From: Selaginella moellendorffii
Lineage: Eukaryota; Plantae; Lycopodiophyta
Reading direction: 5' to 3'
DNA length: 64,000 nt
Assembly: GCF_000143415.4 (NCBI RefSeq)
Contig: NW_003314286.1
Location: 263,766-327,765, forward strand
Below are positions 5,621 to 13,034 of the stretch, in pieces. The translations under genes and the position numbers were made by a program. How positions within the stretch are numbered: the stretch's first letter is position 1; the number at the start of each line of letters is the position of its first letter. The notes under the pieces are model-generated. The model did not search any database and was not told where the DNA came from. It saw only the letters and a program-made list of their open reading frames with translations.

Positions 5621-6590
5621 GGGGCTGGCTGGCGCAGCATATTCCTAGAAGTCAAGGTCACGAGACCTTTGTAGCCGCTCTTTTTTTCTGCTGTTATGTG
5701 GAAACCAGGAGACTTGCAATAAAGCAAGCAGCTGATGACAGTCCGAACCGGACTGACCGACACTGAGCGAACAAATCATGGGCTTCTTTCAAAATTCTTG
5801 GCGCATGAATGCATTTTTCATGATTCTACTGTTTGTCATTTTATATCAACTCTATAGTTTATATAAACCTTCATTTATAAACCCCTTGCACAAGAATTGT
5901 TATGGAATTTGGGCAATCCCTTCTAGCTCATTGTGATTGATTTTGCTTGTACTTCTACAAAGACATACTCTTACAGCATTGAAATGCCTAGGAACATTTC
6001 ATACTGGACTATAGAAGAGTTTTCTAGGTTTGCATCTTTCTTTCTTCTTGTTACTAATTGAAAATTGTATAGTGCTTGAGTTGGACCAGATCTTATGATT
6101 GCTCTCAAGAAGCAATATTCCCCATGTAACCCATAAAATGGTCTGGGCATATGCCACATGACAGTCGTGGCCAGTAACACACCATGCTCAAAATATATCT
6201 GAATAAAAAAGTTTTGAAGTGTCATAACAAAAAGGAGAAAAAAAAATTAAAGACAAAACAATGGAATTTATAATAAAAGTAAAAGATAAACCTCTTACTT
6301 TAAAGAAAGAAAAGTTTAACACAATTTTTTCTAACAAAAAGTCAAGGCTCTAAAAGTTAATTAAAAGCAAAGACTTTTGGCCTCTTCAGAAAGAGAATAT
6401 TGCTTAAAACTTCACTGACCACATTTAATTTTTTCTAGGGACTCCAAGTGCACATATGCTACATTGGCATTGCCAATTGCAAAGGAAGTAGGGGGGGTGC
6501 AGGTGATCGGGGGAAGGGGCTACTGACTACTACCACCCAGGGTTTAGGGGTGCAGAAACACAAGCAACTCGAGTGTCTATACTTTGCTTC

Positions 6591-8654
6591 ATGAGTTCAA
6601 GCACAGTGATTGTTTTTCTTATTTCTTTCTTCATCTTCTCATTCTCAAATGCAAGAGAGGACTCATCTGTGCTTTTGAGCTTCAAAAACTCCGTGGAAGA
6701 TCCATCTAAAACTTTATCCAGCTGGAATATAAGTGATAACTTCTGCCAGCACTGGAATGGCGTAGCCTGCACGACAAAAGGCCGAGTTTCCGTTCTTGAG
6801 CTTGAGCATTTAACGTTACCGGGCTCGCTCTTGGTTTCCACAATCAATGCTCTACCTTTCTTACTGGAGCTATCTGTCTTGGGAAGCAACTTCACTGATG
6901 CCATGAATTCCTCTGAACATGCCTGCTCACTTGAGATGATCAAGCTGTCAAGTAACCAAAACATGACCTTCACGAGCAGTTTTGATGCTATGCTCGGCTG
7001 CCAAGGTCTAAAGGTTCTCAATCTTTCAAACAATCAGATTGATGGTAAGATAGAAGTGCCAATAGGCAATGCTTTGGAGGTATTAGATGTTTCACATAAC
7101 TTATTTAGTGGTGAGGTTCCCCTCTTCCTGTCTTCACAGTGCAAGAGGTTGAGATATCTAGACCTCTCCCACAATCATCTCACCGGAGAACTTCCAGTGG
7201 ATCTTCTTAAAAATTGTACTAATCTGCAACAAATCTCTCTGGCCTACAACAGCTTCCATGGCACGTCATTTCCCTCTATTCACTCCTTGCCATCGCTGGA
7301 ATTTCTCGATGCTAGCTTCAATAACTTCACAGGTCCAGTTCCCGCAATTCATGAGAACCTCAAGCATCTTAATCTCAGCTCAAACAGTTTCAATACAACC
7401 AGGGAAAACTTATGTCCATCGCTCAACTCCTCGAGGCTGGAGAGTCTGATCCTGGTCAACAACAAGCTCACCGGAAGGGTATTGGACAGTGTCTTGAATT
7501 GCTCCAGCCTTAAGATGTTGGATTTGAGCTTCAACTTGTTAGCAGGAGAGATTCCAAGCACTATCTGCAAACAAGTTCCCAAGCTCGAGCATTTCCTCGC
7601 GTGGGTAAACAACCTCGAAGGGCAACTTCCCCCAAACTTGGCCTCATGCAGCAACCTCACCAAGATCATCCTCACTTTCAACAATCTCAGTGGAAACATT
7701 CCACCTGAGCTGTTATCCAACACAAAGAGCCTCCAATGGTTAAGTTTGAGTAATAACAGATTGAGTGGAGAGTTTCCTGATTCATTGGAGCATGCAAAGG
7801 AGATGCTAGTGCTTCAGTTGAGCAACAACAGCCTGCAGGGCAAGCTGCCCAGCAACATGACCGTCCAGACAATAAATCTCCGCGGAAACAGCTTGAGCGG
7901 GAGGATTCCAGCCTCTTTGAATGGTTTCCAAGGCAGCAAACTTGCCAAACCCAACGTTGCGGGGACGAGCTTGAAGATAGCCTCAGGGATCAAGACATGT
8001 GGGTGCATGGACAGCATTTTCATGCTACAAGGAATCTCTTTGGAAGAAATGGAGAGTCGACTCACAGCCAAGAGTGGTGGCTGCAAATGCTCCATAAGTT
8101 TCCTTCCAGCAAGCTTTTATGGTTTCTCCGCTTCCAGCCCTTCCTTCATCGATGTTTCATTCAACAAATTGGTGGGAGGCATCCCTCGCGAGCTTGGGAG
8201 CATGCAGGACGCCTCTTACATCAGCCTTGCGCACAACTTCCTCTCGGGAACAATCCCAGTGGAGCTCGGGGATCTCAAGAACATCATAGGGATGGATTTG
8301 TCATTCAATGGTCTCCAAGGAAGCATTCCAGGCTCGTTTTCCTCGCTCCAGTCCCTGACAGGGTTGAATGTGTCTCACAACAACTTGTCCGGTCCGATTC
8401 CACAGGGTGGCCAGCTTGCGACACTTGATGCCAGTAGCTACGCAGGAAACGCCGGTCTTTGTGGCTTCCCTCTAGCGTCGTGCATCACATCGCCACCAAC
8501 AGCGACAAATCGTGCTGACCATGGCTATGGTGGATTTGGAGCGGTTCTTGCGGTGAGCTTTGCAATTGGGGTGGTGGTCTCAGTTATCTGCTGCACAATG
8601 GTAGTCACCATTGATAGTAAGAAACGCTTTGTGGAGAGAGCTTGCTATGGATGA
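6591..8654 (+). CDS. Intronless LRR receptor-like protein with signal peptide, BRI1/BRL-type island domain, transmembrane helix and a very short cytoplasmic tail (no kinase)
   Basis: N-cap LLSFK..DP..LSSW...C..WNGVAC; many plant LRRs; island VAGTSLK...CGCMDSIFMLQGISLEEM...C; four further LRRs; IPQGGQL...YAGNAGLCGFPLASC; TM; stop after a tail of about a dozen residues. Confidence 0.92.
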   Translation: MSSSTVIVFLISFFIFSFSNAREDSSVLLSFKNSVEDPSKTLSSWNISDNFCQHWNGVACTTKGRVSVLELEHLTLPGSLLVSTINALPFLLELSVLGSNFTDAMNSSEHACSLEMIKLSSNQNMTFTSSFDAMLGCQGLKVLNLSNNQIDGKIEVPIGNALEVLDVSHNLFSGEVPLFLSSQCKRLRYLDLSHNHLTGELPVDLLKNCTNLQQISLAYNSFHGTSFPSIHSLPSLEFLDASFNNFTGPVPAIHENLKHLNLSSNSFNTTRENLCPSLNSSRLESLILVNNKLTGRVLDSVLNCSSLKMLDLSFNLLAGEIPSTICKQVPKLEHFLAWVNNLEGQLPPNLASCSNLTKIILTFNNLSGNIPPELLSNTKSLQWLSLSNNRLSGEFPDSLEHAKEMLVLQLSNNSLQGKLPSNMTVQTINLRGNSLSGRIPASLNGFQGSKLAKPNVAGTSLKIASGIKTCGCMDSIFMLQGISLEEMESRLTAKSGGCKCSISFLPASFYGFSASSPSFIDVSFNKLVGGIPRELGSMQDASYISLAHNFLSGTIPVELGDLKNIIGMDLSFNGLQGSIPGSFSSLQSLTGLNVSHNNLSGPIPQGGQLATLDASSYAGNAGLCGFPLASCITSPPTATNRADHGYGGFGAVLAVSFAIGVVVSVICCTMVVTIDSKKRFVERACYG

Positions 8655-8769
8655 TCGACACACCGAAAAGAAAAAAATGCCCAGCCACGCTTAGTCAAAC
8701 AATTTTAAGCGTTTTTCCATGTGTATGTTACTTTATAAGAAAATCTTATTCAACTTAAATTTAAGATTT

Positions 8770-9065: not shown

Positions 9066-10505
9066 TCATGCTTCATGGGCTAGAGTTTTCTCGGGGAGGA
9101 TCTCCTGGAAAAATTTCTCGAGCTGCTCGTGGTAGAGCGCCGGAAAGCTCCGCAAATGATCTACGTGAGGAGAGATCCGCATGTCGAAGCACGAGACCTT
9201 GTAGCCGCTCTTTTTCTGCAAATCCATGAACTCTTCGACGTAGCTCGCTGGGATGACTCGGTCGGCGCTGCTGTAGATGTAGAGCTGCGGGCATCGCGGC
9301 TGCTTGCTCGACAAAATGGAGATGATTCTTGCAAGTCTCCTGGTTTCCACAGCAGAAAAGGAGAGCCGAGATGTTAGAAACTAGCGCCGCAGGAAAAGAT
9401 CTAGCGAGGAAAGAGCACCTCTTACAGTTTGACAGCGGGAACCGCGAGTAGAACCGCGAAGAACTTCTCCAGGACTGCCAGGAGCAGAGTCTCGGACGCG
9501 CTCGGCTGCGCAAGGATTGCTCGCTCGGCGTCGGTCAGTCCCGCCAGCGACTGCGTCGAGAAGCTTTGCTTCTTGAGAAATGCTGTTGCGAACCCCGAGG
9601 CCCAGACCTTGCCAAAACGTATCAGCTCGATGTAAGAACACGACCAGGATCACGTAAAACTTCGTCGGCTTACCTGGGGACTGAGCTCGGCAGCAGGCCC
9701 CGAATCTACAACGCATCCTTTTATTCTGCTCGTGAGGTGCTGCTGCCCTTGCTGCTGGAGTTTCTCGAGTAGAGCTCCATAGCTGTGAAGAAGGAATCAA
9801 ATCAACACCATTGCTTTGACAACTAGGAAAAAAATAAGAAGACCACTTTACTAAGCTCTAGAAAAACCATTAAAAAAAAATAAAAAAATAAAAACCTGAC
9901 TGCTAGAGAAAACTTACTCTGTTGGGAACTTACAAGAACCAGCCGGTGTTGCTAAAGGTGTGGAACAGCACCGATTTTTCCTTTCTTCCACCGCTCGCTA
10001 GCCACTGCTTGATTTCCGCGTAGAGCAAATCGACATGCCTGTCGGCCTTCCCAATGACGCCGAGGCTCAGCAAATCCGGCATTGGCATCACGAAAGTCAT
10101 AGCACTGATCCCTCTCGAGTTATACCACTCGGCATATTTCTTCAAGTGCTTGTGTTGAGCACCCAGCCATCCCAGGAGCACTACCACCAGATCTCCCTCT
10201 CCATCTCCAAGCCAAGAATCTCCATCGCGGGCATTTTTCCTGTCCGAGACCCCGTGCATGACGATGCTTTGCTTCGCGGGATCCGGAGACACGCGATCTG
10301 TGACGAACGGGAGCTGGAATTTGATCCTCGCCGGCCAGAAGACATGGAAATGCGCCCGCTGCGAGCTGGAGCACGAGATTATCGGCCGCGTTTGGCGACG
10401 CGGAGGAGCTACACGAGCCACACTGGCGACACTGGATCTCGTGGAGCGCGCATTCTTGCCTGTGATGCGGCCCGCAGCAGGACGCGCCAGGGAGTGAAGA
10501 TTCAT
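9066..10505 (-). CDS. DUF829 / TMEM53 family protein, multi-exon
   Basis: Motifs VVLLGWLGAQHKHLKKYAEWY, LFHTFSNTGW, PQLYIYSSADRVIP and SPHVDHLRSFP. Confidence 0.88.
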
Positions 10506-10787
10506 GGCGGAGACCGGCCGATCGTGTGGCAGAAGCCCTAAACCCTGTTTTAGGGTTCTTCGTTTAACATCCTTTTAGGGTTCTTCGCTAACATCAAGAG
10601 ACATAAAAGAATCCTTTGCACATTATTGTGTGAGGCAACCAAACCCATCACCGAGGAAGAAGAAAGAAGAATCGCCACAGCCCAGCCAGCATTGTCCTGT
10701 GACGCCCCAAATCTCTACAAACCCCTGCCCCCCTTCTTCTTCGTTCTTCCTCGTTTCCTCCTCTATAGACCCGCCCAATTCTGCGAA

Positions 10788-12392
10788 TCAAGAGAAATCG
10801 TAAACCTCTGGAATCGCCACCGGGAACTGGTCGATGCAATCCGCCCAGGGCCCCTTCTCGCTCGCCTTGATCGTCCGCAGCGCCCGCCACACGGCGCTGT
10901 TACACTTGAACCCGCTCCCAAACGCGATCTGCCACACGCGGTTCCCCTTCCTCATCCTCCCCTTGGCCTCGATGTACGCGAGCTCGTACCAGATCGAGGA
11001 GCTGGACGTGTTCCCGAATCGGTACAGCGTCATCCGCGACGCCTCGACGTGCTCCGCGGTGAGCTGCAAGTTCTTCTCCAGCTCGTCGATCACCGCGCGG
11101 CCGCCCGCGTGGATGCAAAAGTGGTGGAACGCCAGCCGGAAGTCCGGGATGTATGGCTTCACCGCGCGCTTGAACACCTTGCGCGCCACCAGGAAGCTGA
11201 AGAAGATGATCTGCTCGGACAGTGGCAGCACCAGCGGCCCCATGGTCGTGATGTTGGTCTTGAGCGCCTGCCCGGCGATGGCCATGAGATCTTTGGAGAG
11301 CGACACGCCCATCTTGGCGTTCTCGTCCTCCTCCTGGTAGACGCAGCGGAAGGACTTGTCGTCGGCGCCCTTGTGCGTCCGCACGGTGTGGAGGAGCTCG
11401 TACTTGGCGCGGCGGCGGTCGGATCGTCGGTTGCTGAGCAGCATCGCGGCGCCGCCGACGCGGAAGAGGCAATTCGGGATGAGCATCGAGCGGCGGTTGC
11501 CGAAGTACCAGTTCTGGGTGATGTTCTCGGTGCTCACCACGATGGCGTAGTCGTTGCCGTGGACCTGGAGCATGTCCTTGGCGAGGTCGATGGCGATCAC
11601 TCCCGCGCTGCAGCCCATCCCTCCCAGGTTGTAGGAGCGGATGTTGCCGCGCATCTTGTACTTGTTGACGATCATCGCCGAGAGCGATGGCGTGGGGTTG
11701 AAGAGGCTGCAGTTGACGACCAGGATCCCGACGTCCTTGGGCTTGACGCCCGTCTTGTGGAAGAGCTCGTCCAGCGCGCTAAACATGACGGTCTCGGCCT
11801 CCTGCCGCGCCGCATCCATGGATGGTCGCGGCGGGAGGTAGTGCATCGCGGGCGGGAGCGCGGTCTGCTCGCCCAGCCCGGAGCGCTCCAGGATCCGGCG
11901 CTGGAACTCGAGGCTCTTGTCGTCGAAGCTCCCCGACAGCTTGGAGTGCTCCATGAAGGAGGCGAAGGGGACGCGGATGTTGGGCGATGGCTTGTGGCAC
12001 GCGTAGTCGACGAGGAAGACGCTGCGCGGGCGGGACATGAAGTAGACGGTGGCGGCGAAGACGAGCAGCGCGGAGCACGTCATGACGCTGACGAGGTTGA
12101 ATTTGAGGTGGATCCAGAGCTGGTGGATGTCCTCGGGGCCCAGGCGGCCGACCTCGATCGCTACCCCGAGCATCAGCGGGACGAGCGTGAGCGTGATGAG
12201 ATGCGTCACCAGGTAGTGGTAGCCGAGCTTGACGTACTTGAGGTTGACGCTCTGGAGGAAATCCGGGAGCGGCAGCCGCCGTGATCCTCTGGACCCGCTG
12301 CTCCTCCGCAGCAGCCTCCCGCCTCCATCGCCAATTCCGATTCCTGAGGAGGCGCTAGCAGTGGCAGCGGCGCTGGGTCTCTCGTCGGCCAT
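10788..12392 (-). CDS. KCS: 3-ketoacyl-CoA synthase (very-long-chain fatty acid elongase), intronless
   Basis: Motifs [48 protein letters not shown] and [15 protein letters not shown] at 12392. Confidence 0.97.
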
Positions 12393-13034
12393 CGTTGGGA
12401 TTGTTTCGCGAGCTCCTGTGATACTCTGTTCGACAAAAGCCACGAACTTCTTGTTCTTGGATGAGATTTTTTAGGGTTCTTGGGAGTGAGGGAGGAGAGA
12501 GGCGTGGGTGGCGATGGCGATGGCGATGGCGATGGCGCGACGCATTTAAGGCAAAGCGAGGCCGGATCAGTAGTGCAGTTAAAGGGGCATTCAATGGCAA
12601 CACCAACCTCCACTTTCGGTGAAGAGAGACAGGGCAAAACACACGAAAGAGTTTGGTGCTTTTGTTTTTCTTTCTTGGGCGATCGCTCGCTCGCTCTCTC
12701 GCTCGCTGGAGAGGAGGATTGGGGAGGAATCTCGTTTTCTAGCTGGGATTAGGATGGTGTGTTTGGGATGCTCTCGAGTTCCTAGTGAAATGAAAAAGGT
12801 GGTACATTGGTGGTAATAAGTCGCTCCTTCATTGACTTGGCCGCTCCTCATTTATATCGGGTCTCTTGCGTACAGTGGATGGAGAGAAGAAGAGAGCAGC
12901 GCAGCAGCCATGCCAGCCAGCAGCAACAGGGGAGCAGCCGATTGGTGTGAATTTGATTCAAGTCGGTTGAATTTACAACCCTCTGGCAGGATTCAATCGT
13001 GTTCTTCAATGTCCCTCATGGAGCAAATGCCACC

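Follow-up and report, generated by a model that had tools for sequence, protein, structure and literature searches.

An intronless gene of Selaginella moellendorffii encodes a kinase-less receptor-like protein with a BRI1/BRL-related ectodomain

Gene structure and transcription

The window analyzed here is a 64-kb stretch of the Selaginella moellendorffii genome (contig NW_003314286.1, positions 263,766 to 327,765), and the gene under study encodes a receptor-like protein (RLP) with an ectodomain of leucine-rich repeats (LRRs) and without a kinase domain. The list of open reading frames (ORFs) places an ORF at 6573..8654 on the forward strand, with an ATG at 6591 and a product of 687 aa. The exact 687-aa protein is on public record as P0001, and both this protein and its relatives are recorded under S. 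moellendorffii. The transcript and coding sequence are as follows:

6553..8700, +, intronless mRNA (approximate ends); stranded RNA sequencing (RNA-seq) coverage is unbroken and without joints.
6591..8654, +, coding sequence, 687 aa plus stop codon; taken from the ORF list, the exact protein being P0001.

Reads of three stranded RNA-seq runs, together with one assembled contig, extend across the gene without a break from approximately 6553 to 8700. The Logan contig starts at 6553, where it is preceded by adapter sequence, and the RNA coverage ends in the bin 8510-8703. No splice joints are found within the gene or leading out of it in the three runs and the contig, and the introns of the next gene are plainly visible. 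A tblastn search with five full-length seed-plant BRI1/BRL proteins yields no kinase match in the 64 kb; only 6573-8687 is matched, and this by ectodomain residues. Because the tblastn search returns no kinase and the RNA reads contain no joints, the gene is intronless, transcribed and not spliced to a kinase; splicing to a downstream kinase, an outcome that the preliminary description of this locus had raised, is thus seen neither in the RNA nor in the window. A separate downstream kinase exon is ruled out by the same lack of a tblastn match in the 64 kb and by a convergent DUF829 gene approximately 440 bp after the stop codon. The variant reads, which apparently stem from a second allele, preserve the open frame, with 11 synonymous and 17 non-synonymous changes and 0 stop codons.

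The old JGI model SELMODRAFT_30948 (P0002) is the same as the ORF except that it lacks the first half of the island domain (aa 445-485; 7923-8045), which it treats as an intron. The RNA reads and the contig cross 7923-8045 without a joint, and the JGI intron is therefore an annotation error, which may have concealed the island from earlier surveys.

RNA pairs in minus-strand orientation make up a sizeable share of the coverage over the 3' half of the gene (approximately 7350-8500), with a depth that reaches the sense level in runs X16 and X17. A dip at 8510-8700 separates this minus-strand RNA from the 3' end of the neighboring gene. Its source may be a natural antisense transcript that overlaps the island-coding region, or the convergent DUF829 gene by read-through.

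Architecture of the encoded protein

The protein begins with a putative signal peptide and an N-terminal cap, continues as an LRR solenoid that is interrupted by an island domain ahead of the last four LRRs, and ends shortly after a single transmembrane (TM) helix. The features below were assigned with Pfam, alignments and an AlphaFold2 (AF2) model; the signal peptide and TM helix were assigned by inspection and hydropathy.

6591..6653, +, putative signal peptide by inspection, aa 1-21; hydrophobic N-terminus, then SNA/RED; model helix 4-32.
6657..6773, +, LRRNT_2 N-terminal cap, aa 23-61; Pfam PF08263, E 2.1e-9.
6780..7922, +, approximately 16 pre-island LRRs, aa 64-444; Pfam LRR_1 and LRR_8, regular strands in the AF2 model.
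7869-7871, +, T427 at the BRI1 W564 position; residue mapping.
7923..8150, +, island domain of 76 aa, aa 445-520; alignments with BRI1/BRL, AF2 model elements.
7998..8084, +, conserved island core C470 ... Q480-G481-I482 ... C498 (= BRI1 C609 ... G620-I621 ... C635); mapping, hhalign.
8151..8438, +, four post-island LRRs (C3 region), aa 521-616; alignment, model strands at 519, 543, 567 and 591.
8412-8423, +, QLAT loop in the last LRR (Q608 and T611 = BRI1 Q747 and T750); alignment, residue mapping.
8439..8483, +, C-terminal cap GNAGLCGFPLASC, aa 617-631; N620, L623, C624, G625 and C631 are invariant or nearly so in the alignment.
8529..8606, +, TM helix without GxxxG, aa 647-672; hydropathy window 2.71, motif scan, model helix 650-683.
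8607..8654, +, 15-aa cytoplasmic tail TIDSKKRFVERACYG plus stop, no kinase; translation.

Pfam detects the LRRNT_2 domain and LRRs in the 687-aa protein and nothing else. The strings on which the preliminary description relied (LEHFLAWVNNLEG, LQWLSLSNNRLSG, VLQLSNN, VAG..C..MDSIFMLQGISLEEM..C and GGQL..NAGLCGFPLASC) are all present in the translation, and the protein does stop just past the TM helix, with 15 residues following a hydrophobic helix of 26 residues. The four post-island LRRs and the C-terminal cap are likewise present; however, the count of exactly four is not specific to BRI1, as PSKR1 and LRR-RLPs share the arrangement of an island domain followed by four LRRs (ID+4LRR) (PMC10834447).

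The AF2 model has a predicted local distance difference test (pLDDT) value of 85.8 and a predicted template modeling (pTM) score of 0.82, and comprises a confident solenoid with approximately 16 LRRs, the island, four LRRs and the cap. The island elements of the model (strands 460-465, 475-479 and 501-504 and helix 484-494) occur in the same order as the aligned segments of the BRI1 island.

Sequence and fold relatives of the ectodomain

A phmmer search against PDB sequences places BRL3, BRL1, BRL2 and BRI1 on top (369-352 bits; E 5e-109 to 1e-103), and each of these matches is a single alignment that runs from residue 133-136 (273 for BRL2) to 632-644 and spans the island. PSKR1 scores 191 bits and the RLP RXEG1 scores 244 bits. 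FLS2 and GSO1 score close to the BRLs when the whole protein is compared by HMMER. When residues 436-640 alone are used as the query, where total scores are driven by repeat number, only the alignments with BRI1, BRL1 and BRL3 cross the island, and those with all other chains begin after it. In a Foldseek comparison with the PDB, the top 22 matches are all BRI1-family chains (E 3e-39 to 5e-34), followed by HSL1 (2.5e-30) and then PSKR1 (9e-29). As judged from these sequence comparisons and from the predicted fold, the ectodomain has common ancestry with the ectodomain of the BRI1/BRL receptor kinases.

Island domain

The Pfam model of the brassinosteroid (BR) receptor island domain (PF20141) does not match this protein even at E<=10; the controls are matched (Arabis BRI1, 4.9e-32; Diphasiastrum BRL, 1.2e-8). 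An island-only hidden Markov model (HMM) was built from the islands of 71 BRL kinases, with 240 shuffled islands and the islands of Cf-type RLPs as controls. With this HMM the island of the present protein scores 4.5 bits, the shuffled islands reach at most 2.3 and the Cf-type islands stay below 0. The Diphasiastrum island scores 48.5 bits and the Selaginella islands range from 4.5 to 11.9, with paralog P0004 at 0, so that 11 of the 12 Selaginella family islands score above every shuffle and every Cf-type island. A comparison of the Selaginella and BRL island profiles by hhalign gives a probability of 83.6% and an E value of 8e-6 over 32 columns, which are exactly the Cys..QGI..Cys core. In this profile-profile comparison, no similarity to BRL is detectable in the island flanks, on either the Y597, Y599 and K601 side or the Y642 to S647 side.

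The Selaginella islands are 70-78 aa long and share with BRI1/BRL the two Cys residues, the G-I pair and the acidic helix that follows; no family member has lost the Cys pair or the G-I pair. The Cf-type islands of the outgroups are 40-55 aa long and carry Kx5Y or Yx8KG. One or both of these lysine motifs are reported in >75% of LRR-RLP islands (PMC10834447), and Kx5Y is present in all three angiosperm RLP islands scanned. Both motifs are absent from the present island and from all nine Selaginella family islands scanned.

Among the Selaginella paralogs, the island varies more than any other part of the protein, with an identity of 25% vs approximately 50% in the flanking LRRs; the corresponding values for the BRL kinases are 50% vs 56-61%. 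This variability suggests that the ligand specificities of the paralogs have diversified.

Steroid-contact residues and the SERK-docking loop

The BRI1 pocket residues were mapped onto the protein through two independent alignments, and their conservation was counted in the 71 kinase-bearing BRI1/BRLs. In the AF2 model, island residues 450-480 have pLDDT values of 48-63. The positions, the residues in the BRL kinases and the residues in the present protein are as follows:

W564: W in 71/71; T427 here.
Y642: Y in 71/71; F504 here.
Y599: Y or F in 71/71; I463 here.
K601: K or R in 71/71; S465 here.
G644: G in 67/71; P506 or a gap here, depending on the alignment.
I563: I in 58/71 and V in 11; Q426 here.
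Y597: Y in 33, F in 30 and L in 8; L461 here.
M657: I in 53/71; S518 here.
F681: variable, Q in 33/71; S542 here.

A Trp equivalent to W564 is found in none of the Selaginella paralogs. In BRI1, W564H weakens binding approximately 100-fold and has the phenotype of a bri1 null; the ligand is positioned by Y599 and Y642 (10.1101/2025.08.08.669299). The replacement of conserved steroid-contact residues makes it unlikely that the protein binds a brassinosteroid in the BRI1 mode, and these sequence differences suggest that something else is probably bound. The proposal in the preliminary description of an ancestral-type steroid-binding ectodomain is not supported, in view of the changes W564T, Y642F, Y599I and K601S and the loss of G644; W564H alone has a null-like effect in BRI1.

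The QxxT loop of SERK docking is intact (GQLAT; Q608 and T611 correspond to BRI1 Q747 and T750), and Q608 and T611 are nearly invariant in the alignment. The QxxT/S loop of the last LRR is the SERK contact in BRI1, PSKR1 and RLPs (PMC10834447).

The Selaginella family and its position relative to the BRL kinases

Word-based and exhaustive searches identify a family of approximately 13 gene models in S. moellendorffii, which include redundant ones and have lengths of 510-940 aa and identities of 36-48%. NCBI has automatically named these models 'BRI1-like 2/3', 'BRL2' or 'BRI1'. Pfam finds no kinase domain in any of them, and all members that reach the C-terminus stop soon past the TM helix. 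In a scan of the juxtamembrane regions, the outer region of the present protein contains one acidic and one basic residue, and its TM helix has no GxxxG; paralogs P0006-P0009, P0188 and P0190 have 7-10 D/E in this region, and P0013 has two GxxxG motifs. The exhaustive search of representative proteins was dominated by giant fused LRR models (1,500-7,800 aa); matches of normal size were used, and single units excised from a few fused RLP models provided outgroups for the tree.

Several gene models depart from the family pattern. The P0190 model continues for 222 residues past the TM helix with a weak match to GDSL lipases, and is probably a fused gene model. P0252, with approximately 30 residues in place of the 70-78-aa island, is either an island-less member or mis-modeled. 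P0003, on another S. moellendorffii scaffold, is 391 aa long, matches the N-terminal half of the present protein at 85% identity, and ends before the island; it may be a truncated paralog or a broken copy.

A protein of the homosporous lycophyte Diphasiastrum complanatum (P0224 / P0270, 1091 aa) contains the LRRNT, LRRs, a Pfam island (1.2e-8) and a kinase. Its pocket is BRL2-like and intact (W564, F599, R601, Y642 and G644), and its nearest relatives are the BRL2 proteins of Ginkgo, Cryptomeria and angiosperms; no named Selaginella BRL kinase is among its best 120 relatives. Judging from this sequence, complete BRL-type receptor kinases exist in Lycopodiaceae, and the premise in the preliminary description that canonical receptors are generally considered absent from lycophytes was too broad. 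The presence of a complete BRL2-like kinase in a homosporous lycophyte indicates that the BRL receptor is older than the lycophyte/euphyllophyte split.

An IQ-TREE tree was computed from 41 ectodomains and 697 columns, with four angiosperm Cf-type RLP units and two LRR-XII-type kinases as outgroups. The Selaginella proteins and all BRL kinases are split from the Cf-type RLPs and the LRR-XII kinases at 100/99. The Selaginella proteins form a clade with 100/100 support, and lie outside a 95/80 clade of BRL kinases that includes the Diphasiastrum protein. Constraining the Selaginella clade to group with the Diphasiastrum BRL costs 2.9 log-likelihood units and is not rejected by the approximately unbiased (AU) test (p-AU 0.153). 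These sequence-based results are compatible with two histories: the kinase may have been lost within lycophytes, or the split may be older.

Sequence, fold, tree and hhalign results thus agree with the core of the preliminary description, a kinase-less receptor-like protein with a BRI1/BRL-type ectodomain layout and a homologous island core. Regarding the grouping with Cf-like RLPs or PSKR that it had also considered, the protein stands apart from the Cf-type RLPs in the tree (100/99); PSKR1, which is not among the ectodomains of the tree, has a far lower score and no alignment over the island.

Comparison with known receptors

The closest known receptors are the BRI1/BRL kinases (LRR receptor-like kinase (RLK) subfamily Xb, with BRL2 as the oldest branch). 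The protein shares with them the LRRNT, the LRR solenoid and an island of approximately 70 aa ahead of the last four LRRs, in addition to the island Cys pair and G-I motif, the S662 equivalent and the QxxT loop in the last LRR; they are also its top matches in sequence and fold and join it on one side of the 100/99 branch in the tree. It differs from them in having a 15-aa tail in place of the kinase, approximately 20 LRRs vs 25 and no Pfam Island match, and in the replacement or loss of W564, Y599, K601 and G644, the change of Y642 to F and the unrelated sequences of the island flanks. PSKR1 and PSY1R, LRR-RLK Xb members with a short island, have the ID+4LRR layout and use SERK (PMC10834447); PSKR1, however, reaches only 191 bits vs 352-369 for the BRI1/BRLs, with an alignment limited to the post-island LRRs, and a Foldseek E value of 9e-29 vs 3e-39 for BRL3.

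A kinase-less protein of BRL type is a known kind, since Ngou et al. (2024) reported LRR-RLP counterparts within the BRI1/BRL ectodomain clade that closely resemble BRL1/BRL3 and retain the BR-binding residues (PMC10834447). The Selaginella proteins resemble these counterparts in lacking a kinase, in clustering by ectodomain with BRI1/BRL and in the ID+4LRR layout. In contrast to them, the Selaginella family is old, expanded and lineage-specific, lies outside the BRL kinase clade in the tree (95/80) and has a remodeled pocket; Selaginella is not named in the main text of PMC10834447. The RLPs of the Cf-9, RLP23 and RXEG1 type, which belong to the ID+4LRR clade, have in common with the present protein the lack of a kinase, a single TM helix, a short tail, an island with four LRRs and a Q-containing SERK loop, and some Selaginella paralogs also have their acidic outer juxtamembrane stretch or GxxxG. 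The present protein differs from these RLPs in its 76-aa island with the Cys pair and QGI and without Kx5Y or Yx8KG, in its near-neutral outer juxtamembrane region without GxxxG, and in its position apart from the four angiosperm RLP units in the tree (100/99).

Earlier studies state that S. moellendorffii has no BRI1/BRL homolog (PMC3862569, PMC9223546) and report that only EMS1-like proteins were found in it (PMC10671120), and an older paper states that island domains are confined to seed plants (PMC4926431). Among these surveys, one required a kinase domain (PMC4926431), and two started from similarity to AtBRI1/BRL (PMC3862569, PMC10671120). No paper describing this Selaginella family was found in a literature search that was incomplete. 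BRL-type ectodomains with a recognizable island core do occur in Selaginella, as kinase-less proteins. The family offers a test case for the model of Ngou et al. (2024), in which ID+4LRR receptors switch between kinase and kinase-less forms, and for the change of an island pocket once a steroid ligand has been abandoned. The locus does not by itself account for brassinosteroid sensing in Selaginella.

Interpretation

The reading that we consider likely is that this expressed, intronless gene encodes a kinase-less LRR receptor-like protein of a Selaginella-specific, BRL-related family that has diversified and signals via a partner kinase. The sequence suggests that the protein is probably a receptor subunit of the ID+4LRR kind that is anchored in the membrane and binds a ligand. 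A ligand would bind at the island and the inner surface of the LRRs, and the C3 region, which keeps the QxxT loop, would recruit a SERK-type co-receptor. Because the tail of the protein is just 15 residues, the output must come from elsewhere and would be supplied by one or more partner kinases. Several points weigh against this reading. Ligand binding, SERK binding and the signaling role are all inferred from sequence. The island likeness of this single protein is weak (4.5 bits, no Pfam match), and the N-terminal half of its island is modeled at low confidence (pLDDT 48-63, residues 450-480). The PSKR, PSY1R and EMS1 ectodomains are not among the 41 of the tree, and rankings against PDB chains by HMMER and Foldseek were used in their place. 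In addition, this member is without the acidic outer juxtamembrane stretch and the GxxxG that mark SOBIR1-dependent RLPs, and the allelic dN/dS of approximately 0.5, a rough estimate from the listed variants only, is compatible with relaxed constraint.

The lack of a kinase, the 15-aa tail, the conserved SERK-contact loop and the missing features by which RLPs are coupled to the adaptor kinase SOBIR1 would also suit a decoy or negative regulator, which binds SERK or a ligand without output and thereby damps the signaling of other receptors. This is unlikely, as an expanded family with a variable island fits ligand diversification better than uniform sequestering. A role as a non-canonical sensor would have one or more of these kinase-less, BRL-derived proteins perceive a Selaginella steroid (a BR, a BR precursor or another sterol) together with SERK through a rebuilt, largely hydrophobic pocket, in place of the BRI1/BRL kinases that are reportedly missing from S. 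moellendorffii. Selaginella responds to BR and has CYP90 genes, and no BRI1 homolog has been found in it (PMC3862569; PMC9223546); several replaced pocket positions are still hydrophobic (L461, I463, I476, F504, F519 and V407), the BR pocket is reportedly structurally plastic (10.1101/2025.08.08.669299), and the kept QxxT loop and the absence of a named Selaginella BRL kinase from the 120 best relatives of the Diphasiastrum BRL point the same way. Such a sensor is nevertheless improbable: a Thr occupies the position of W564, which is W in 71/71 BRL kinases and null-like when mutated to His, Y599, K601 and G644 are replaced or lost, I563 has become Q, and the flanks that bear most of the steroid contacts have no detectable similarity. 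Moreover, an island identity of 25% among paralogs is unlike a receptor for one conserved hormone. In a milder form of this idea, the Selaginella clade may be an ancient sister of all BRL kinases that retains the pre-steroid state of the BRL-type island.

The loss of pocket residues, the 17 non-synonymous vs 11 synonymous allelic variants and the truncation of the relative P0003 at 391 aa might instead indicate a decaying remnant, a BRL gene that has lost its kinase and is drifting toward a pseudogene. We regard this as very improbable, because the 687-codon ORF is intact and the variant reads contain no stop codons, transcripts of the gene occur in three RNA runs, AF2 models the solenoid with confidence, and the Cys pair, G-I, S662, LRR asparagines and cap cysteines are kept across a family that has diverged to 40-54% identity. 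A generic LRR-RLP, whose likeness to BRI1 stems from its repeats and whose island match is due to chance, would account for the missing Pfam island match, for the single-sequence island score of just 4.5 bits and for the nearly equal whole-protein HMMER scores of FLS2 and GSO1. This explanation is disfavored and hardly tenable in view of the island-only profile-profile E value of 8e-6, the 11 of 12 family islands that exceed every shuffled and Cf-type island, the restriction of island-crossing alignments to BRI1/BRL, the top 22 Foldseek matches that are all of the BRI1 family, and the split from the Cf-type RLPs at 100/99.

Neighboring genes

The downstream neighbor is the DUF829 gene at 9096-10640 on the minus strand, which is convergent and starts approximately 440 bp past the stop codon; beyond it lie 3-ketoacyl-CoA synthase (KCS), NAD kinase, pentatricopeptide repeat (PPR) and tubulin genes. 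The DUF829 gene has three introns, one of which ends at either of two positions separated by 7 nt (9338 to 9418 and 9338 to 9425), and because of this 7-nt difference the minor splice form shifts the frame. The KCS gene (FAE1/KCS) at 10788-12443 on the minus strand is intronless. A few reads over the KCS gene contain a non-canonical skip of 119 nt (10942 to 11062, TC..TG), with long loose ends at 11062, and these reads probably derive from a KCS paralog, not from splicing.

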